DNA of 64,000 bases from the sequence record KU521356.1; one strand, written 5' to 3'. Shown one piece after another: positions 1,351 to 45,832 of this stretch. The notes below the pieces were generated by a model. The model did not search any database and was not told the DNA's origin. It saw only the letters and a list, made by a program, of their open reading frames with translations. A program made the translations under genes and the position numbers. Within the stretch, counting starts at the first letter, position 1. Every line of letters starts with the position of its first letter.

Positions 1351-1953
1351 ATGCAGCGCAATAATGACCCGCAGCAAGTAATCATGTCGATTGAGATGTA
1401 CAATAGCCTACTGGCTATGGCTAATGATTCACCTCATTACACGACAAAACTTATCCAACGTCACGTGCGAAAGATGAATCCTTTTTTACAACCTGCACAT
1501 CTAAAGAATGTCAGAACTAAGGAAGCTATTCGGTCCCAACGTATTCGTGAAGCTCGGGCTTTCTTCGAAGCCAATCATAGAAAAATTCTGTACGCAAAGG
1601 TTGATATGGGTAACTGTAAAAAAGGAGATGATCCGGTTTACTTCCCATGCATATCTGAACGTATTGCCAAGAATAGACAACTAATCCAAGTTCGTCATGC
1701 CAATGAAGTTGGTTATGGACGGTGCATCCGGTTGGTAGAGGCTAAATATCTCACAACCATTATTCCTGATGGATATATCCAAGGAACTGGGCCGTATAAA
1801 AAATATCTTGTTAAAGAGAATGGTCCTTACGATATCCGTGAACAAGAAGAAAAACGTAAACAAGCTTTTTCGAGTGAGATAGCTAAGAAGTTTGAGTTCA
1901 AACATGATTCTTACGATATGGATAATCTCAAAAAGAATTATTATACACAATGA
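1351..1953 (+). CDS. Hypothetical protein, paralog of 26666..27049
   Basis: GGAG RBS; shared N-terminal pattern with the 26666 ORF. Confidence 0.75.
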   Translation: MQRNNDPQQVIMSIEMYNSLLAMANDSPHYTTKLIQRHVRKMNPFLQPAHLKNVRTKEAIRSQRIREARAFFEANHRKILYAKVDMGNCKKGDDPVYFPCISERIAKNRQLIQVRHANEVGYGRCIRLVEAKYLTTIIPDGYIQGTGPYKKYLVKENGPYDIREQEEKRKQAFSSEIAKKFEFKHDSYDMDNLKKNYYTQ

Positions 1954-2080
1954 GATTAGTATAAATGGACATTAGTTTATCTCCAGTATGAGTATTCCAA
2001 CTTCTTAAATATTACTAAAGAGCAGACTATGAATATATCAGTGTTTGCTCTTTGGAGGTAATTACTCTGGAGCATCTAAT

Positions 2081-2413
2081 ATGTGTGCAATTCCTGTAAT
2101 ACCTGTATCAAATGACATCACTATTATTAAGCCAGGTGATACAGTTTGGTCAACAGGTGTTCTCGGTATGAAAGCATCCTGTGAGCATCCACCAGCGCTA
2201 TTCTGTATACGGGGTGATGAACTTGAAGTTCTAGAAATTAGCCCTCCCACGGAATATGAGAAAAAAGAAATGTATAAGTGCCGCTTAAAAAGAGGCACTG
2301 GTCATTTCTGGATTTATCGTAGTGGGTTTACTAAAACAAAGCCATTTAATCACAATATGACTGGTTATGAGTTTTGGGATGGTGAGAAAATTAGAGAATA
2401 TGGTGGGTATTAG
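2081..2413 (+). CDS. Hypothetical protein (possible SH3/KOW-like barrel)
   Basis: ATG 2081 with GGAG upstream preferred over TTG 2045; IKPGDTV motif. Confidence 0.6.
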   Translation: MCAIPVIPVSNDITIIKPGDTVWSTGVLGMKASCEHPPALFCIRGDELEVLEISPPTEYEKKEMYKCRLKRGTGHFWIYRSGFTKTKPFNHNMTGYEFWDGEKIREYGGY

Positions 2414-2424
2414 AGTAAAAGAAA

Positions 2425-2550
2425 ATGACTAGCGAAAATAATAAATCAGACATACAACATGAACAAGAAGAACCACCCATATTCAAGATGCTTTTTCTAA
2501 GTGCAGTTATAGGTGGATCATTATGGGAAATAATTAGACAGTGGTTTTAG
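2425..2550 (+). CDS. 41-aa small protein with C-terminal hydrophobic helix
   Basis: Read by hand, below track cutoff: MTSENNKSDIQHEQEEPPIFKMLFLSAVIGGSLWEIIRQWF. Confidence 0.55.
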   Translation: MTSENNKSDIQHEQEEPPIFKMLFLSAVIGGSLWEIIRQWF

Positions 2551-2584
2551 CCACTGTCTTTATAATGTATTTTGAGTTATAAAA

Positions 2585-2933
2585 ATGTCCATAGAAAAAG
2601 CCTATTCCAATTTAATAGCTTCAATTAAAACAGTTAGAAAACATTTTCCTAAATTAATTCAAGAGAAGAATTTAGATGAGGAATTACGACGGGAGTTTAC
2701 GACTCCTATTCAATTCGACCCGACTAAGAAATCGGGAAACTCCTTTTGATAACGAACAGTCAGAAATGGATAAGTTAAAACCAATCGATGACTTTTGGAA
2801 AACTAAAACAATTAAACCATCAGATGCTTATTTAGAAAGAAAGAATGAGCAACTAAAGATGATTAATCCGCATAAAGTTTATAATCCATTCAATGAAAAA
2901 GATACGGTATTAAAACCTATTTCTAAATTATAA
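2585..2933 (+). pseudogene. Frameshift-split ORF (54 aa + downstream +1 frame)
   Basis: TCC TTT TGA at 2741-2749; removing one T joins it to the open frame ending 2933. Confidence 0.5.
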
Positions 2934-2945
2934 AAAGGATTTACT

Positions 2946-3365
2946 ATGAAACAAGATCATCAATTCTGGCATGATAAACCATTTTCAGAAAATGAAGTTA
3001 GGAAGAAACTTGGCGGATCGTCATTATCCAAACTAAGTACAGAACAGATTTTAGAAGAGTGGCGAACAGAACATATTGAACGTAATACTCCTTTAAGTAA
3101 AAGGCTATATGACATTCGTAATAAAGCCATCAATGATTACTCACTTACTGATAATCAACAAGTTAATAATTTGTTGCAATGTGCAGTGGATCAAGTCTTA
3201 GCAGATGTGATCATTATGTTAGATGGTTCAGTGCCACATAAGCAATTTCAAATTTCTGAATATGAAATTGAAATGGACAGTAAGGAATTATCGATTAAAG
3301 AACATACTCGTCCAATAACTGAAGATCTACTAAAAAATTATTTTGAATTGGTGAATGGCAAATGA
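2946..3365 (+). CDS. Hypothetical protein, possible distant paralog of 29477/30208
   Basis: AAGGA RBS; VIIMLDG..F motif. Confidence 0.7.
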   Translation: MKQDHQFWHDKPFSENEVRKKLGGSSLSKLSTEQILEEWRTEHIERNTPLSKRLYDIRNKAINDYSLTDNQQVNNLLQCAVDQVLADVIIMLDGSVPHKQFQISEYEIEMDSKELSIKEHTRPITEDLLKNYFELVNGK

Positions 3366-3706
3366 CTGAACGTATTCATTACTCAGATCGTAAGTTACCG
3401 CTGTGTTTTAAAGGTGTTTATGACATTCCAGTTGTAACCATCGAAAACTATTGTAAGTGGTATGGTCTTAATATTGTCTATCCAGATGGGCGTGTTGAAT
3501 GGGTTGACACTGATTTACTTGCTGAAATAGAACGGGAAAGCAAGTTCTCAGTAATGGGTGATCACAACTATCATCCAATTCTGCTGGACAAAGTAGCTGA
3601 GAAGATTGGCGGGGTGGCATGTGAGGTTGCACGTGAGTTGATGACTGGTCGTTGGGTACTAGAGGTTATGGACGGTAAAATCCCTGGTCAAGAAAAATTC
3701 TGTTAA
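3362..3706 (+). CDS. Hypothetical protein
   Basis: ATGA overlap with upstream stop. Confidence 0.75.
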   Translation: MTERIHYSDRKLPLCFKGVYDIPVVTIENYCKWYGLNIVYPDGRVEWVDTDLLAEIERESKFSVMGDHNYHPILLDKVAEKIGGVACEVARELMTGRWVLEVMDGKIPGQEKFC

Positions 3707-3710
3707 ATGG

Positions 3711-4259
3711 ATGATTAAAATGGGTATTGATGTTTTCCCTGTAGTTACCAAACGTTCCACACGTTCTTCAGATGGTGCACGTGTACTTAAATTCATTGAC
3801 ATGCATACATGCGAGGCTCTTAACTTTAGCCGTTGCTATTATCTTTGGGATTGGTTAACCGATAATAATGAGTATACCAACCGATTCTGTCGACCGACTC
3901 TTAAAGGCTGTGGATTTGGTACACTCGTCAGTGATGACTCGCATCCAGTATGGAACAACTTTGAAGGTCGCCTTTCACAAATTGTCAATTCCAAACAGGA
4001 CAATCTAACACCGTACGCCTATTATAGTGAAGATGGTTGGTACCCACTTACAATGATCTTCAATATGGAAGACCTCTGGAACTTCGATTATGATCAGAAG
4101 CCAACGATGTTCGATCAAGATGTTAATGGTGAAGTCATTTCGGAAAAAACCTATCGCCAGCTATTTTTGAGCAATAGTGTGGATGATGGTTATTTCAAGT
4201 TCCTGGAAGAAACTAAAAAGATGGAGTGTGTTCACTTCATCGCCCGATTCTGGGGATGA
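3711..4259 (+). CDS. Hypothetical protein
   Basis: 182-aa ORF tightly packed in operon. Confidence 0.7.
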   Translation: MIKMGIDVFPVVTKRSTRSSDGARVLKFIDMHTCEALNFSRCYYLWDWLTDNNEYTNRFCRPTLKGCGFGTLVSDDSHPVWNNFEGRLSQIVNSKQDNLTPYAYYSEDGWYPLTMIFNMEDLWNFDYDQKPTMFDQDVNGEVISEKTYRQLFLSNSVDDGYFKFLEETKKMECVHFIARFWG

Positions 4260-4282
4260 TTACTTAACAGGAAAAGTTAAAA

Positions 4283-4852
4283 ATGGCTATTCTATCTGAT
4301 AAAACAATCACTGACTTATCTAAAGGTCGTGAACCAATGATTACGGATTTCATTGGTCACCAGGTCCGTGAAAAAGATGGTAAAAAGATTATTAGTTATG
4401 GGCTTAGTTCATATGGGTACGATGTAAGGCTAGCCCGTAATTTTAAGATCTTTTCTAATGTAACAAGTGCAGTTATTGACCCATTAGACCCTAGTGATGG
4501 ATTCTTAGTAGATTGGACTGGTGATTATTGTATTATTCCACCTAACAGTTATATTCTTGGTCATACTGTAGAATCGTTTAATATTCCAGATGATGTCCTA
4601 GCTATTTGCACAGGTAAATCAACCTATGCACGACTAGGTGCAATTGTTAATGTCACTCCTATTGAACCAGGTTTCAAAGGACAAGTCGTTATTGAGATTG
4701 CAAACTGCACTACACTACCTCTAAAAATTTATGCTGATATGGGTATTGCTCAGTTTATGTTCTTTAGAGGTGATGCCCCATGTGAAGTTAGTTATGCAAA
4801 ACGTAATGGTAAATATCAAAATCAAATTGGTATCACAACAGCGAGACTTTAA
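4283..4852 (+). CDS. dcd: dCTP deaminase
   Basis: MAILSDK start, ISYGLSSYGYDVRL, GKSTYARLG, TPIEPGFKGQVVIEIAN, KYQNQ.GIT motifs. Confidence 0.95.
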   Translation: MAILSDKTITDLSKGREPMITDFIGHQVREKDGKKIISYGLSSYGYDVRLARNFKIFSNVTSAVIDPLDPSDGFLVDWTGDYCIIPPNSYILGHTVESFNIPDDVLAICTGKSTYARLGAIVNVTPIEPGFKGQVVIEIANCTTLPLKIYADMGIAQFMFFRGDAPCEVSYAKRNGKYQNQIGITTARL

Positions 4853-4854
4853 TA

Positions 4855-5091
4855 ATGCTTAGTCCTAACCAAGAAAAGTTTGTCAGTCGGCTAACTGAAA
4901 TTACAAAGGCATCTGATTCAGAACTTTGTGCAGTTAATGATACAATCTCATTTGATATTTCAACTGATAACATGCATGCTGAATTCTTTAATTTGGTTGC
5001 TGAACTGCATTTTAAGATTGTTCATATGTTTCCAATTAACCAATATAACACTCGTTATCGGGTTGTTATTCATGAACCATTCTATCTATGA
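4855..5091 (+). CDS. Hypothetical protein
   Basis: Coupled to dcd stop (TAATAATG). Confidence 0.65.
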   Translation: MLSPNQEKFVSRLTEITKASDSELCAVNDTISFDISTDNMHAEFFNLVAELHFKIVHMFPINQYNTRYRVVIHEPFYL

Positions 5092-5114
5092 TTGACCAAC
5101 ATAGTGGTTTATAC

Positions 5115-5150
5115 ATTTAAAGCATTTTAAACAGTATATCACAAATGTGA
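5115..5150 (+). promoter_or_regulatory. Early-type promoter (TATATCAC variant)
   Basis: ATTTAAAGCATTTTAAACAGTATATCACAAATGTGA, nearly identical to the copy at 31074-31109. Confidence 0.75.
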
Positions 5151-5181
5151 TATAATCAACATATATAGGAGATTCTAATAC

Positions 5182-5658
5182 ATGTCACGCAATACTATTT
5201 CTTCCTGGAGTGAACTTGGTTCAATGCTGGGTGTACAGCCGAAGCCGGTTCAGAAGAAACAGAAAAATCGAGCTAAAAAGAATCATGAAGCTGCGGTTCG
5301 TAAAAATTCTAGGGAAACCTTTATGGACATTGCTGCAAAACAAACTAAATCAAGTCCTAACTTCCGTAAGAACAAACAAAAAGATGTTCGTCATTGCAGT
5401 GTATGTGATAATATTAAACTAAAAGAAAATGGTATCGAAGAAGGGCGGGCCAAACCAATTGGTATGACCGAATTAGCTAAGTTCAAAGTTGAGCTAGCAA
5501 AAAATGGTCTTGAGCTATTCGGTTGTGAAGTACGTAAGCAAGAATCTTTTGCAGATGCATTTTATGGTAATAATACCATTTGTGAAGAAACTGCAAAGCT
5601 GATTAAAGCATACCAGGAAGAGTTTGATTCAGTCTTCCGCCGCGCTATTACTGCCTAA
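5182..5658 (+). CDS. Basic hypothetical early protein
   Basis: AGGAG RBS downstream of early promoter; Lys-rich N-terminus. Confidence 0.75.
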   Translation: MSRNTISSWSELGSMLGVQPKPVQKKQKNRAKKNHEAAVRKNSRETFMDIAAKQTKSSPNFRKNKQKDVRHCSVCDNIKLKENGIEEGRAKPIGMTELAKFKVELAKNGLELFGCEVRKQESFADAFYGNNTICEETAKLIKAYQEEFDSVFRRAITA

Positions 5659-12886: not shown

Positions 12887-12921
12887 GCATAAATAGGAGA
12901 GCTATTTAGCTCTCCTTTATT

Positions 12922-12955
12922 GCATTAAATTTTTTTTGAAATCTATATTACATAT
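12922..12955 (+). promoter_or_regulatory. Early promoter
   Basis: CATTAAATTTTTTTTGAAATCTATATTACA, TATATTAC at 12944; same string recurs before 28415. Confidence 0.8.
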
Positions 12956-13068
12956 TTGGTCAAGTCATATCAAAATAGGTAGTTATAATGCTAGCATTAC
13001 ATTCACTACTATTATTAGTTATAGTGATTTGTTATATAATTCATAAGTGGTTGTGGTATACTTTCAAT

Positions 13069-13161
13069 ATGTTTAAACTAAAAGACATTATTAAAAATAA
13101 AGACAATTTAACTAATGATGAACTATTAAAATTACTCATTGATAAAATAAAGGCAACCTAA
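13069..13161 (+). CDS. 30-aa small ORF coupled to next gene
   Basis: MFKLKDIIKNKDNLTNDELLKLLIDKIKAT; TAATG overlap; weak RBS. Confidence 0.35.
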   Translation: MFKLKDIIKNKDNLTNDELLKLLIDKIKAT

Positions 13162-13628
13162 TGTATCCATTCTTTACAGGTAATGAGAAAGTTACTGTAG
13201 ATGTTCTTGATGATAAACATAATCTACATAGAAGTTGGACTGATTATAAACATCCCATCACGACGCGTGTGGACGGTAAACTAACCAATGTGTGGTATAA
13301 AGTTGAACCACCGATGAGTGCTAAGGATATTGAAAATAACTTTACAATTGACAAAGATAAAGTTAAATTATCTAATCGTTTGCACCAAGCTTTAGATGCA
13401 ACGTTGATTAAAAATGAATTAGAAGAGTTTAACAAATTAATTGATCTATGTGTAAAACATGTTAATTCAGTTAGTATTCATCTAGGTCTTACTATTTGGA
13501 AATTAGCAGATACTGTAAAATATGAAAAAGCAGATTTAAAGAAACTATTTAATGCACATTATACCAAATCTACTGAACTTGTAAAAGAAAAGAATATAGT
13601 GCCCTCAGTAGAAGATATCTTCCTATAA
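13161..13628 (+). CDS. Hypothetical protein
   Basis: 155-aa ORF. Confidence 0.7.
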   Translation: MYPFFTGNEKVTVDVLDDKHNLHRSWTDYKHPITTRVDGKLTNVWYKVEPPMSAKDIENNFTIDKDKVKLSNRLHQALDATLIKNELEEFNKLIDLCVKHVNSVSIHLGLTIWKLADTVKYEKADLKKLFNAHYTKSTELVKEKNIVPSVEDIFL

Positions 13629-13650: not shown

Positions 13651-14559
13651 ATGCTAAAGGTAAAATCATTACTCACTGGCCATATTCTTCGAGCTACCTA
13701 TGATTGGTTTCTTGAGAATAACTTCAGAGATATTCTAATTGTAGCACATACTCAATTAGTACCTGATTTATCTGAGGTAGCTCTAAAGCATGCGAAAGAA
13801 GATCACACTATCACTTTCAATATCCATCCACGCTGTGCAAAGAATTTTTATATCAGTGACGAATATATCTCTTTCAATGTAACAGTAAATGGAGTTGGGG
13901 TCAGTATTAAACTTCCTCTTTATGCAGTATTGGGTGTAGTTACACCTATTGATGATAATTCTAACGCATTCTTTGAAATGCCACTAGTAGATAGATATCT
14001 CAATGCAGATACTATTCGTGCAACATTAGAAGGAACTGTTAATAATGTAGTTGACAAAAACCCAGTATTAACTACCGTAGGTAATGTCACTGAGGTTAAT
14101 TTTAAAAATAAAGCCGATACCACTAATGGTAAGTTAGTTGTAAGGAATACATCTGAGAATGAGCATGATCAGATGATTGAAAGCGCCATTAACAGAGTAA
14201 CTGAATTTAGTAATCCAGAATTAGATGCACATATTAGAGTAGCGGTAACTGTAATTAAACAGAATGCACCAGAATTAATTATGGATTGGTGTGAGCGGGT
14301 TATTAATTGTACACGTAATGAAAACTATCAGGATAACATCAATGTACTTATGATGGAACTCCTCAGTTACCCTATTTCAAATGTGGTTAGTGAATCAACT
14401 GTGGACTCGGGTGATAATACATCTAATTCATTTGACAATGATGTAAATAAGATGGTTGAGGATTTCAATAATTCTTCCAATTCGCAGGTTATTATTAATA
14501 AACCTTCTCGTCCTACCGGTACACCAAAACTCACTGTTATTAAAGGTGGTAAGAAATGA
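13651..14559 (+). CDS. sspB: SspB-like ClpXP adaptor with internal extra domain
   Basis: HILRATYDWFLEN / FNIHPR / LPLYAVLGV match the SspB core (E. coli YLLRAFYEWLLDN, LNIAPR, VPLAAVLAI); C-terminal PKLTVIK resembles the ClpX-binding tail. Confidence 0.8.
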   Translation: MLKVKSLLTGHILRATYDWFLENNFRDILIVAHTQLVPDLSEVALKHAKEDHTITFNIHPRCAKNFYISDEYISFNVTVNGVGVSIKLPLYAVLGVVTPIDDNSNAFFEMPLVDRYLNADTIRATLEGTVNNVVDKNPVLTTVGNVTEVNFKNKADTTNGKLVVRNTSENEHDQMIESAINRVTEFSNPELDAHIRVAVTVIKQNAPELIMDWCERVINCTRNENYQDNINVLMMELLSYPISNVVSESTVDSGDNTSNSFDNDVNKMVEDFNNSSNSQVIINKPSRPTGTPKLTVIKGGKK

Positions 14560-14813
14560 ATGCAACTTTAGCAATTCTTTTTAGTAGTATCAGTATCGCT
14601 GGTTATCAAGCCAATGGTGCATCGCAGTCAACCGCTGAGTTCTCTGACATGGCTACTTGTTTTAGCGCGATTGAGCGCATTCAAAAACTAGCTAAAGCAA
14701 GTGCTATTCGTAATAATGTAGAGACTGTAAAAATCAGTGATGGTGTTCTATTACGTTATTTTTCTTCTAGTACTAGTAAAGTAGAACATACTCTAATCTG
14801 TGTAAATAAATAG
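14556..14813 (+). CDS. Small exported/membrane protein with F-x5-C...C pattern
   Basis: Hydrophobic N-terminus, FSDMATC, C-terminal LICVNK. Confidence 0.65.
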   Translation: MNATLAILFSSISIAGYQANGASQSTAEFSDMATCFSAIERIQKLAKASAIRNNVETVKISDGVLLRYFSSSTSKVEHTLICVNK

Positions 14814-14821
14814 GTACGGAT

Positions 14822-15529
14822 ATGTCTGAGAAAATGTATTTATCTTTTTCTGGAATTGGACACAATGACGTAATCAAACAAGATCTTAATGGATTCGTTC
14901 CAATGGATGTATCAACTATTGATAATGAAGTGGCTGATCGATTATTTTATACTCCATTCAATAGTTCTGAACCAGGTACCTCATTACCTAATGTTGCTAA
15001 TGTGGTATTCAAGGTATTACCTATCCATATCGAGGATAACACTATCTGTGTTTTAGATAGTTGTTCTAGTACCGAATACTCATTGAATGACTTAGTTGAT
15101 ACCAGTGTCTCATCATTAGAAACATATGGCCCATTAATAGATTTACGTAGTAGTGATCCAATTGAGACATATGCTAATCAGGCAGTGTATACTTGGTTAA
15201 ATAAGAATATCTGTGATATCGAATTTGAAGTACATGGCGGGCTGCAAGTGCAACTAACTGCTGACCAAGTGCGTTCCAATGTTAATGCATTTGTAGCAGG
15301 TATTGATCTTGACATCGACGATAAATTGATGGTATATGTGGTGATTAAAATCAATGATCGTTTATACGATGCTTGGTCTAGTCAACATGTGGTGGAACCA
15401 TTAACAATGTATCATGTGCAAGGTGGTCATGAGCCTATTGTCTATAGTGAGACCCATATTGAAAATAGCCTATTGCGATATGCTAAAGAGAAAGGTTGGG
15501 CTGAAATTTTGACTCGTATTGGTCTGTAA
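14822..15529 (+). CDS. Hypothetical protein, possible degenerate NUDIX fold
   Basis: IHIEDN and FVAGIDLD segments recall a phage NUDIX-like family; no intact Nudix box. Confidence 0.5.
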   Translation: MSEKMYLSFSGIGHNDVIKQDLNGFVPMDVSTIDNEVADRLFYTPFNSSEPGTSLPNVANVVFKVLPIHIEDNTICVLDSCSSTEYSLNDLVDTSVSSLETYGPLIDLRSSDPIETYANQAVYTWLNKNICDIEFEVHGGLQVQLTADQVRSNVNAFVAGIDLDIDDKLMVYVVIKINDRLYDAWSSQHVVEPLTMYHVQGGHEPIVYSETHIENSLLRYAKEKGWAEILTRIGL

Positions 15530-15634
15530 TAAAAATACTTCTTATAGACTAATAATATAGGTAAGATACTAGCCGATTGGTTAGTTGCGCTTAGGGAGTC
15601 CTTCGGGACTCCCGTATATCGTCTAGGAGGTTTT

Positions 15635-15928
15635 ATGTATACAGTTACACTTGAACAAGTAGGACACCGTATACCGTCTAGTTTAAGTGCTTTTGTAATT
15701 AGACCGTTTGAAAATACCATTACGCATAATGATACGTCTTATTACTTGATCATGGGTAAAGATGATTTCGATAACATGCACATGGAATGGCGAGATGTAG
15801 CTGTAGTTGATAGTCAAGCCGTTATAGTTGCTACATACACTCCATCGAAAAACTCATTTAATCTTGTAAAAAATGAATTAGGTATTCCAGTTAATATCAA
15901 ATACAAACGGATAGAGGTTGATCTATGA
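15635..15928 (+). CDS. Hypothetical protein
   Basis: AGGAGG RBS. Confidence 0.75.
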   Translation: MYTVTLEQVGHRIPSSLSAFVIRPFENTITHNDTSYYLIMGKDDFDNMHMEWRDVAVVDSQAVIVATYTPSKNSFNLVKNELGIPVNIKYKRIEVDL

Positions 15929-21619: not shown

Positions 21620-21680
21620 CATAAAGCCCTCCCTTCGGGGAGGGCTATTGCACTAAATTTTATTTGAGATCTATATTACA
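21620..21680 (+). repeat. 54-bp terminator + early-promoter cassette, copy 2
   Basis: Identical to 6149..6202; consensus TATATTAC at 21672. Confidence 0.9.
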
Positions 21681-24683: not shown

Positions 24684-24755
24684 ACCCTCCCTTCGGGGAG
24701 GGTTTTATTTATCTTTTTTTTGTATTTAAACTATTTAAAAAGCTATATTACAAAT
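24684..24755 (+). promoter_or_regulatory. Terminator + early promoter cassette
   Basis: ACCCTCCC-TTCG-GGGAGGGT; TATATTAC at 24744. Confidence 0.85.
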
Positions 24756-43523: not shown

Positions 43524-44309
43524 ATGCATCGTCGAACTATGTACAGATTTAGCTTATCATATTCCAATAAACTTATTAATAATAACCCACTTGGCTTTAC
43601 AGTCGAGAGTTATCTTGAAAGCTGGTTTGACAAACTCAAGTGCCGATTAACTAAAGGTTATACCAAAAGCCATGCTATTCATTTTCGTGGAAGTTGGAAA
43701 TACTTTGAATTAGATCAATATAAGAACAATGCTTTCTTCAATCAATATCACATGGTGATGCAGTCACTAGAAGATCTAGAAAGAAAGATTAGTGGAGTGA
43801 TTGGGTTAAGTATCAAAATCACTAAACCAGAACGACATTTATTTCATGTTCTATTTAACCATGAAAAGATTATTCTATCCCCTAATGGCATTATCTTTGA
43901 TGTACGTGTTCCAAAACACACCGTGATAGCTAATCCTGATGTTATGGGATATCGTAATTGCAATGTAGATAAACTGACGGTATTTGGCGAGCGCTCTAAA
44001 GTTAACTATGTGGTTAAACAAGTACGTTATGCCTTAAAGCAGAAAGGGGTGACAACTGTTGCCAATAGTTCAATGGCTCGTTTTTTACATGACCTATTTC
44101 ATCCAAAATACAGAGACAATCAAATTTATAACTACGGCATGACTATGTCTGATGTTTATGTAATGGCCGTATTCAAAAATGGGTATACGGAAATCTATGG
44201 TAAAGATGTAGGTGAAGTATTTGAAAGTCATACTCTAGATTTCCTAGAGCGTGAGTACATGATCTGTGGACAATATTTTCCCATGTTATCCAGAGGGCTG
44301 CTAGTATGA
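43524..44309 (+). CDS. Hypothetical protein, paralog of 42595
   Basis: CNVDKLTVFGERSKVN motif; AGGAA RBS before ATG 43524. Confidence 0.75.
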   Translation: MHRRTMYRFSLSYSNKLINNNPLGFTVESYLESWFDKLKCRLTKGYTKSHAIHFRGSWKYFELDQYKNNAFFNQYHMVMQSLEDLERKISGVIGLSIKITKPERHLFHVLFNHEKIILSPNGIIFDVRVPKHTVIANPDVMGYRNCNVDKLTVFGERSKVNYVVKQVRYALKQKGVTTVANSSMARFLHDLFHPKYRDNQIYNYGMTMSDVYVMAVFKNGYTEIYGKDVGEVFESHTLDFLEREYMICGQYFPMLSRGLLV

Positions 44310-45832
44310 TTATAGAGACCTTATTGCAATATTACGCCATGTTCATCGACATCTCTCAAAAGAATATGGTGATGGGTGGTGCGATTGGTATGGCGATTGG
44401 TGGTGTATTATGGACCACTATCCGAGGTCTACCAAGTAAGATAGTTAGATTCACATTAAATCAATTTACAGTTAGTTTACATATCACTAATACTGGTAAT
44501 GGTTTAAATGAGAAAAACTTTGACTCATTTATGGAGTGGTATATTAAACAACCATTAGCTGGATTTAATCGCCGTTTTTCAACCAACGTTGATGAGCAAA
44601 GTTATAGTGCAACTAAACAGAAAATTGGTGTTGGTTTTGGCTTACATTTCTTTCTGTTTAAAGGTAGGTTATTCTGGTTTGTAAAAGCACGCCGGGATAG
44701 CCAAAATGCCAGTCGAGACCAGATGGACATTACTATCCGTGGATTATCTAGAAGTAGTAAACTTATTATTGATTTAGTTGATGCGTACCACTGGCGTCCA
44801 AATGAAATGGGTCTTACTATCTCACATTGGGATGGTAATCGCTGGGGTAATGAAATCGAAGTTACTAAACGCGATATCAACACGGTGATTTTGCGTAAAG
44901 AGATCAAAGAAGAATTCCTTAATAAGATTGAAGAATTCTATTCTGATCGGAAATGGTACGATGATCGTGGACTACCCTATAAATTCACTTGTGTTCTAAC
45001 AGGTCCTCCTGGTACTGGTAAAACCTCAATCAGTAAAGCGATTGCCTCACATTTTAATAAAAATGTTAGTGCACTGTCATTAGCCTCTATGACCAATGAT
45101 AGTCTTAGGCGGGCATTTACTACACTACCTAAAGGTAATATTCTTCTAATTGAAGATTTCGATGATACCCCGGCAGTTAAAGATCGTGTTTTAAATGATC
45201 CTGTAAAACTAGATAAAGAGATAAAGGAATTAGAGAGGAAATATTCTTTTATTGATTTAATTGAAAAATATCCGTCTGCATGGGTTGATCTTAAAGATGA
45301 CTATGAAGGATACTCTGTAGTTGGGTTTAATGACACCATCTATATCTTTGATGAAAATAGCGATGATCAAGGTTTTGGGATAAGTGCTTATGCTATGGCT
45401 GAACTGGGTGTTTCAAAATGGGCCGATGAAAAAGATCCATTATTTACCACAATTCGCCGATGGTGGAAATTAAAGAAGTGCATGAAGAATGGAATCACGT
45501 ATGAACAACCAGCTAGCGGATTAACTTTGTCAGCTCTATTAAATGGTCTAGATGGCATTGTTCCACTAGATGAAACTATGACCATTCTAACTACAAACCA
45601 TCCTGAGAATATTGATAAAGCACTTCTAAGGAAAGGTCGCGTTGATTACATGGTGGAGATTCCATATCTACGAGATCAAGAGGTTAGGGAGTATATTAAA
45701 CTAATGTTCCCTGACTTCGATATTCCTGAAGATATCAGATTTAAAGATCAACCAGGGTGTGATGTAATGGCGGCTTTTTCAAATAACCGTTATGACCCTA
45801 ATGCTTTTATCAATAGTCTATTGAAATATTAA
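44306..45832 (+). CDS. BCS1-like membrane-anchored AAA+ ATPase
   Basis: N-terminal TM; GFGLHFFLFKGRLFWF (BCS1_N-like); WY.DRGLPYK..LTGPPGTGKTS; LLIEDFD; LTLSALLNGLDG; TTNHPE.ID.ALLR.GRVD. Confidence 0.85.
   Translation: MIIETLLQYYAMFIDISQKNMVMGGAIGMAIGGVLWTTIRGLPSKIVRFTLNQFTVSLHITNTGNGLNEKNFDSFMEWYIKQPLAGFNRRFSTNVDEQSYSATKQKIGVGFGLHFFLFKGRLFWFVKARRDSQNASRDQMDITIRGLSRSSKLIIDLVDAYHWRPNEMGLTISHWDGNRWGNEIEVTKRDINTVILRKEIKEEFLNKIEEFYSDRKWYDDRGLPYKFTCVLTGPPGTGKTSISKAIASHFNKNVSALSLASMTNDSLRRAFTTLPKGNILLIEDFDDTPAVKDRVLNDPVKLDKEIKELERKYSFIDLIEKYPSAWVDLKDDYEGYSVVGFNDTIYIFDENSDDQGFGISAYAMAELGVSKWADEKDPLFTTIRRWWKLKKCMKNGITYEQPASGLTLSALLNGLDGIVPLDETMTILTTNHPENIDKALLRKGRVDYMVEIPYLRDQEVREYIKLMFPDFDIPEDIRFKDQPGCDVMAAFSNNRYDPNAFINSLLKY

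Follow-up and report, generated by a model that had tools for sequence, protein, structure and literature searches.

A diverged SspB-like protein with an inserted helical bundle and an extended tail in phiKZ-like jumbo phages, a candidate partner of host ClpXP

Background

Little has been documented about how phages take over host proteolysis. The closest known counterparts of the gene analysed here, PHIKZ232 (gp232), include the cellular SspB proteins, such as b3228 of Escherichia coli and PA4427 of Pseudomonas aeruginosa. The P. aeruginosa protein is 135 amino acids long, ends at K135 and is disordered over residues 99-135; its terminal tail, R128-K135, mediates binding to ClpX with a Kd of 27 nM, and alanine replacement makes this binding about 7-fold weaker (PMC13251409). 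It has also been reported that an engineered split SspB carrying folded FRB/FKBP domains between the core and the C-terminal XB peptide still delivers substrates (PMC8138137).

Genomic data have led to proposals of phage-borne Clp adaptors (ClpS, RAY gp039), but no such adaptor of a nucleus-forming phage has been characterised. [quoted passage not shown] The ClpS adaptors of jumbo phages (Iyer et al. 2021, PMC7824862) follow the same concept, that of a phage adaptor steering a host Clp protease, although ClpS belongs to another adaptor family and serves ClpAP, unlike the SspB-like gp232; SspB is absent from that survey of jumbo phages, which discusses phage ClpS and ClpP. What was known before this analysis is that phiKZ-type phages have an SspB homolog, as stated in a few GenBank annotations, and that RAY gp039 is a putative ClpXP adaptor. 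In the literature we found no paper dealing with the function of gp232, with ClpXP during infection by phiKZ or with the gp232 features described below.

The DNA of phiKZ is shielded in a protein shell, and the phage proteins located in the cytoplasm, together with host defence and stress proteins, stay within reach of ClpXP. If the proposal made here is true, a phage protein that acts early to redirect or block this protease would offer a direct handle on that interface.

Results and discussion

Identity of gp232 and its SspB domain

The window, that is, the whole stretch of 64,000 nucleotides from KU521356.1 that was analysed, belongs to a phiKZ-like jumbo phage of P. aeruginosa, and the 2.6 kb around gp232 are 100% identical to KTN4 and 99.8% identical to phiKZ. 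In the list of open reading frames the gp232 coding sequence spans 13651..14559 on the + strand (302 amino acids plus stop), and the protein has the C-terminus KPSRPTGTPKLTVIKGGKK. An identical protein (100%) is found in phiKZ, KTN4, PA7, SL2 and many other phages, labelled as hypothetical in most records and as stringent starvation protein B in two (Churi and Bobae). It constitutes its own PHROG, 25970, with a function-less label (E 5e-214), which is also matched by the SspB-like protein of Psa21 (E 2.9e-9), and it matches PHROG 8945 (phage "SspB-like", host takeover) weakly, over residues 14-99 (E 2e-4, 22 bits). No other SspB-like gene was found in the phage genome.

An initial annotation, made from the letters alone, had described this open reading frame as SspB-like, with an SspB core at about residues 5-110, and both statements were borne out. 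The domain occupies residues 1-110 (13651..13980, +), with HILRATYDWFLENN as its N-terminal helix and a strand reading NIHPR, and its sequence matches cover residues 11-110. The NCBIfam model NF008762 (PRK11798) aligned with residues 11-110 (E 3.9e-13), and a phmmer comparison with SspB chains from the PDB (1ox9) gave a clean, colinear alignment over residues 11-108 (E 1.4e-8). The Pfam family PF04386 was matched with an E of 6.1e-5 and 23.5 bits, narrowly missing the gathering score of 27 bits, and the NCBIfam score was 49.7 bits against a curated cut-off of 202 bits. Because these scores lie below the curated cut-offs of Pfam and NCBIfam, gp232 is best regarded as a divergent SspB member and not as an equivalog.

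Structure comparison, which the initial annotation had suggested as a check, also recognised the SspB fold: Foldseek matched the gp232 model to 1ox8 (E 1e-5), and VIA-align superposed it on 8et3_Z, the SspB chain of a ClpXP delivery complex, over 101 residues (Z 10.2, rmsd 3.1), the full-length AlphaFold model being poor overall (mean pLDDT 50.7, from three sequences). Residues 1-110 are thus a genuine SspB substrate-binding domain by sequence and by fold, with about 30% identity to cellular SspB.

To the plan shared with cellular SspB, namely a core, a linker and a C-terminal XB-type peptide with the tail core PxLxhhK, gp232 adds several differences: it is about twice as long, a four-helix bundle and a conserved helix lie within what should be the linker, GGKK follows the XB-like motif, two conserved blocks of the core are gone, and the gene is part of a phage early operon, whereas the cellular sspB lies next to sspA. 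The phage-encoded homologs RAY gp039, pf16 gp18 and Ralstonia phage FLC4-3B gp94 have 128-150 amino acids and a terminal xLxVVK and, unlike gp232, carry neither the insert nor the GGK ending.

For residue-level comparison we used 20 gammaproteobacterial SspBs taken from a spread of genomes, alongside published data on the PAO1 SspB. Of the core positions, gp232 keeps four in the N-terminal helix (R, A, W and N), two in the NIxPR strand (I and N) and, beyond these, F, G, P and F; the helix HILRATYDWFLENN aligns with YLLRAFYEWLLDN, its R, A, W and N being unchanged. In contrast, gp232 has replaced both ARF at 74-76 and YAxENGxG at 94-101 (E. coli numbering), blocks with a conservation of at least 85% among the 20 cellular proteins. 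Both are also missing from its Pseudomonas jumbo-phage relatives, and both are present in the SspBs of the ordinary-sized phages RAY, pf16 and FLC4-3B. We infer from this pattern that gp232 keeps the SspB fold, and probably the dimer helix too, and that its cargo surface has changed. The loss of both blocks favours altered cargo over ssrA-type cargo, and binding of ssrA or of RseA/MucA-type cargo by gp232 seems doubtful on the basis of its residues. This loss of the cellular cargo-side blocks is a new observation.

An orphan four-helix bundle within the linker

Beyond the SspB domain, the initial annotation had counted about 170 extra residues including a helical segment. Extra residues are indeed present, but they number about 190, and the helices form a four-helix bundle at residues 167-238 plus a further helix at 259-274 instead of a single segment. 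A low-confidence linker rich in N, T and V comes first (residues 111-166; 13981..14148, +), with two short predicted strands and a pLDDT of 25-42. It is followed by the inserted bundle (14149..14364, +; pLDDT 82-92 when residues 158-302 were folded alone), then by a disordered linker rich in S, N and D (residues 239-258; 14365..14424, +; pLDDT below 50), and finally by the helix with the conserved KMVEDFNN (14425..14472, +), which is 69% identical to that of P0002, a metagenomic homolog of 318 amino acids with 61% overall identity to gp232. Folded alone, residues 158-302 gave the bundle, a disordered stretch, the helix, here at 261-274, and two short strands in the tail. The disorder-like parts of the gp232 linker are limited to residues 111-166 and 239-258. 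The bundle is acidic, with 13 D+E against 5 K+R, and its third helix has the conserved sequence NAPELI.DWCERVI.

HMMER searches with residues 111-302 against 1.84 billion representative proteins found relatives limited to the phage's own clade, namely P0002 and one fragment. Against structure libraries, the PDB and the viral BFVD, the bundle retrieved generic bundles at best, and the BFVD match was gp232 itself only. The added central domain, as modelled, is real, folded and an orphan, and such an orphan four-helix bundle inside an SspB linker is new. A folded insert would be compatible with adaptor function, given that the engineered split SspB mentioned above works with folded inserts.

Several candidate relationships were rejected. 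Likenesses of the bundle to p84, the four-helix bundle (4HB) of the Zuotin ribosome-binding region, the DAXX 4HB and T4 Spackle had Z values of 5-8.7, below the threshold of the tool for helical bundles. A match of the linker and first helix to staphylococcal SSL7 (E 5e-6 and 26 bits in NCBIfam, where the cut-off is 313 bits; E 0.002 in the PDB) and one to FUR (E 0.008) were taken as compositional, since both are far under the cut-offs, fall in low-confidence sequence and lack support from the fold search. The top score of residues 111-302 in the ESM Atlas, 0.77, is a lead only.

A cellular-type tail with a clade-specific extension

The tail begins with a basic, proline-rich lead-in, SNSQVIINKPSRPTGT (residues 275-291; 14473..14523, +), which aligns with PPQPPRGGR of E. 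coli SspB, and continues with the XB-like motif P-K-L-T-V-I-K (residues 292-298; 14524..14544, +), which fits the cellular consensus, and with the extension G-G-K-K (residues 299-302; 14545..14556, +), which is specific to the Pseudomonas jumbo-phage clade. The end of gp232, TPKLTVIKGGKK, aligns with that of E. coli SspB as TPKLTVIK against RPALRVVK, and one cellular SspB ends in GKPKLTVVK, compared with GTPKLTVIK in the phage. In the gammaproteobacterial sample, the C-termini of all 20 cellular SspBs read [RK]-P-x-L-[KRT]-h-[VI]-K. The LxVVK-type tail of the initial annotation therefore stands as a motif, PKLTVIK agreeing with the XB consensus of 20 out of 20 cellular proteins, but it is not terminal, for GGKK follows it. 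No such extension is found in any of the 20 cellular SspBs or in those of RAY, pf16 and FLC4-3B; the 20 cellular proteins and the three from ordinary phages all stop at a final K or D.

The tail motif P.L[KRTM][VLI][VI][KQ] occurs once in the six frames of the 64-kb window, where 0.24 matches are expected by composition, and a GGK-type ending is carried by gp232 alone among the 592 open reading frames of the nearest complete phage genome, which rules out the tail as a general phage sorting signal. The tail alone matched nothing among PDB sequences. When gp232 was compared region by region with P0002, the one divergent homolog on which these values rest, identity was 89% in the tail, 76% in the substrate-binding domain (SBD), 69% in the helix, 55% in the linkers and 43% in the bundle, making the tail the best-conserved and the bundle the fastest-evolving part of the protein. 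Conservation and uniqueness together point to selection for this tail as a trait specific to the gp232 family. From its sequence, we consider it likely that this tail binds host ClpX.

In the PA7 record, an open reading frame of 721 amino acids on the - strand (end at 181030) also closes with an XB-like L-K-L-I-K, within AVLLKLIK, which may be due to chance.

Relatives in other nucleus-forming phages

PhiPA3, D6, RVTF4, Psa21 and 201phi2-1 encode proteins that, like gp232, combine a diverged SspB domain with a long C-terminal region, their N-domains being 21-27% identical to that of gp232. The tail PxLxhIxGGK[KA] is common to gp232, P0002 and the proteins of PhiPA3 (gp270, 262 amino acids, ending in KPTLTLIKGGKK), D6 (235 amino acids, PPHLRVIQGGKA), RVTF4 (238 amino acids, APHLTVIQGGKA) and Psa21 (gp299, 248 amino acids, GPNLTLIQGGKK), while the diverged protein of 201phi2-1 (373 amino acids) has the ending WLQVHEGGLK, with GGLK. 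Unlike the tails, the middle regions of the sister-phage proteins are unrelated to that of gp232 and, between lineages, to each other, and they lack the four-helix bundle. An h-h-[DE]-F element is nevertheless present about 20 residues before the tail, as KMVEDFNN in gp232 and as PLLDFG or PLLEFP in D6, RVTF4, Psa21 and PhiPA3. The extended tail as a signature of Pseudomonas nucleus-forming phages, with variable middles, is likewise new.

A gene with BCS1_N and AAA domains is the second gene downstream of the SspB-like one in D6, RVTF4 and Psa21, whereas 30-40 kb separate the BCS1-like and SspB-like genes in phiKZ-type phages and in PhiPA3. The conserved three-gene cluster, encoding the SspB-like protein, a 240-aa protein and a BCS1-like AAA+ protein, spans 2501-5334 in the Psa21 sequence (L106), 2474-5288 in that of RVTF4 (L105) and 1474-3357 in that of D6 (L004). 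The 240-aa protein had no match in Pfam or PHROG and shows a faint likeness to phiKZ gp233 only. Synteny of gp233 with the gene that follows the SspB-like gene in Psa21, D6 and RVTF4 was considered and rejected as too weak (BLASTP E 0.014; hhalign E 0.009, probability 4%). In the window, the open reading frame at 44306-45832 (+, 508 amino acids) is a candidate BCS1_N plus AAA ATPase, placed by offset from the PA7 record.

A phage of Xanthomonas, LucasX, encodes a 188-aa SspB-like protein (L110, 853-1419) that ends in FRARRKPSS, without an XB-type ending; it would be a phage SspB homolog with no obvious ClpX tether.

Expression and location during infection

Published proteomics place gp232 early in infection. 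In phage Churi its ortholog gp079, which is 99% identical, was detected 15 min post infection as a non-virion protein, on the basis of 8 peptides and 72 PSMs that gave 45% coverage (PMC11849849 S3 Table), and the Churi orthologs of the two downstream open reading frames, one of 85 amino acids (gp078) and gp233, were also detected by mass spectrometry at that time (PMC11849849). RNA libraries from five studies contain the gp232 region as contigs, which informs on its presence and not on strand, level or ends.

In phiKZ, SEC-MS identified PHIKZ232 as one of six proteins that are enriched in shell preparations and absent from virions, and the mNeonGreen-tagged protein was diffuse outside the phage shell and not on it (PMC10449902). 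As published, tagged gp232 is located in the cytoplasm, where ClpXP is. In the supplement of the same study ClpX did not change markedly on infection (log-change -0.05), and ClpX is not mentioned in its main text (PMC10449902). The co-fractionation with the shell hints at another partner of gp232.

A candidate adaptor of host ClpXP and its alternatives

Judged by its core and its tail, gp232 probably plugs into the host ClpXP protease. The reading that we prefer, with a probability of roughly 45%, is that gp232 is an early cytoplasmic member of the SspB family that docks host ClpX by its tail and acts as an adaptor with changed cargo. The SspB-like domain would dimerise by its N-terminal helix and hold a client peptide, the tail PKLTVIK-GGKK would tether the complex to the N-terminal zinc-binding domain of host ClpX, and the client would be fed into the ClpX pore for ClpP to degrade. 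The four-helix bundle of the phiKZ clade, set in a normally flexible linker, might either bind clients as an additional module or act as a rigid spacer. This adaptor reading is favoured by the strong conservation of the core and by the lineage-specific middles, which look like swapped functional parts. Speaking against it are the four residues behind the XB-like motif, the family scores below the curated cut-offs, the two lost blocks, the lack of a marked ClpX change in the SEC-MS supplement and the enrichment of PHIKZ232 with the shell.

All the evidence on the tail applies equally to a decoy or competitor, in which the gp232 tail would occupy the N-domains of ClpX without useful delivery and displace host SspB and other adaptors or substrates that depend on these domains. 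ClpXP-dependent host responses would then be blunted, for example SspB-assisted degradation of MucA and activation of AlgU, or phage proteins would be protected, and the main role of the SspB-like domain would be dimerisation, giving bivalent docking of high avidity, or the sequestering of tagged peptides. The loss of the ARF and YAxENGxG blocks fits weakened cargo binding, a clade-specific GGKK is what would be expected of a tail tuned to outcompete that of the host, perhaps with higher affinity, gp232 is expressed early, and docking of host SspB to ClpX through its terminal tail feeds the AlgU pathway (PMC13251409). The substrate-binding domain, however, is 76% conserved and keeps the NIxPR strand and the core residues, seemingly beyond what dimerisation needs, and the variable middles resemble lineage-specific functional parts more than inert spacers. 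We regard a decoy as unlikely.

A partner other than ClpX seems improbable. The tail would in that case dock the phage BCS1-like ATPase encoded at 44306-45832, the chimallin shell or the import apparatus, and the SspB fold would have been turned to peptide binding or dimerisation unconnected with proteolysis by ClpXP. The neighbourhood of the BCS1_N plus AAA gene in D6, RVTF4 and Psa21, the enrichment of PHIKZ232 in shell preparations with which it co-fractionates, and a GGK extension unlike every cellular XB sampled all speak for it, but the BCS1-like gene is remote in phiKZ-type phages and PhiPA3, the tagged protein is diffuse and off the shell, and the tail has a core that matches a cellular XB almost perfectly. 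To our knowledge, BCS1-type ATPases have no ClpX-like zinc-binding domain, and thus no docking domain of the ClpX type, which also argues against such a partner. More improbable still is canonical replacement, in which gp232 would substitute for host SspB, or boost it, in clearing ssrA-tagged (tmRNA) products, the insert being a neutral spacer. Membership of the same family, the same core-linker-XB plan and the existence of ordinary-sized phage SspBs with canonical tails (RAY gp39, pf16 gp18 and FLC4-3B gp94) are in its favour; against it, the blocks kept in cellular and ordinary phage SspBs are gone from gp232 and its jumbo-phage relatives, the insert is confidently folded with a conserved helix and is not spacer-like, and the host already has its own SspB.

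Returning to the adaptor reading, a bolder version, which we hold to be quite unlikely, is that these proteins are modular, plug-in ClpXP adaptors in which a constant, diverged SspB core and a PxLxhIxGGK tether are combined with a middle swapped by lineage to select victims. The phiKZ bundle would recruit a specific host protein for destruction by ClpXP, e.g., a defence, stress-response or ribosome-associated factor, which would be degraded in the cytoplasm around the phage nucleus, and the tail would outcompete host SspB. The value of gp232 lies mainly in a sharp, testable and cheap hypothesis on how nucleus-forming phages deal with host proteolysis, and it offers as handles an 11-residue tail, a bait domain and a set of natural homologs that share the tail but differ in the middle. 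An extended XB variant could also become a tethering tag for engineered degradation in Pseudomonas.

Transcriptional organisation around gp232

The gene lies in a co-directional block on the + strand with no obvious internal signals, composed of gp230.2 (57 amino acids) and gp231 (155 amino acids) upstream (12988..13628), gp232, and the 85-aa open reading frame (Churi gp078) and gp233 (235 amino acids) downstream (14556..15529); gp231 matches only its own PHROG, 26021. The block is headed by a phiKZ-type promoter motif, TCTATATTACA (12942..12952, +), and TATATTAC is listed as a phiKZ promoter motif (PMC7058600 Table 2). Just before it, the hairpin AGGAGAGCT-ATTT-AGCTCTCCT, followed by a run of T (12895..12937, +), is likely a terminator that closes the upstream unit, a function assigned by inference; the same stem was found by the scan on the opposite strand. 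The extended block ATTAAATTTTTTTTGAAATCTATATTACA at 12942 is common to the sites at 21670, 28406 and 42154, and a 30-nt piece, 12923-12952, recurs in other RNA contigs.

Along the window, the promoter block ATTAAATTTTWTTTGARATCTATATTACA has exact copies at 12942, 21670, 28406 and 42154 and copies with one mismatch at 24742 and 48863. Often standing behind a GC hairpin, these copies show where successive transcription units begin on the + strand.

Immediately downstream of gp232, the 85-aa open reading frame at 14556-14813 is uninterrupted in the window and overlaps the gp232 stop, and the phiKZ record has two tiny coding sequences there instead, PHIKZ232.1 (24 amino acids) and 232.2 (54 amino acids). 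Since the frame is intact here and its product was detected by mass spectrometry in Churi, the annotation or the sequence of phiKZ probably needs revising at this point.

Within gp232, a 33-nt piece at 14382-14414 (residues ~245-255) is also contained in longer contigs of three RNA libraries, which makes it a short repeat with further copies in either the phage or the host. Beyond gp233, very many short contigs of a Nanopore cDNA library start at 15559-15566, with a bin depth of about 36,000 against about 22 upstream. The segment 15559-15620, which lies just before the GC hairpin GGGAGTCCTTCGGGACTCCC and the start of gp234 at 15635, looks like the 5' end of a very abundant transcript or a small structured RNA or leader.
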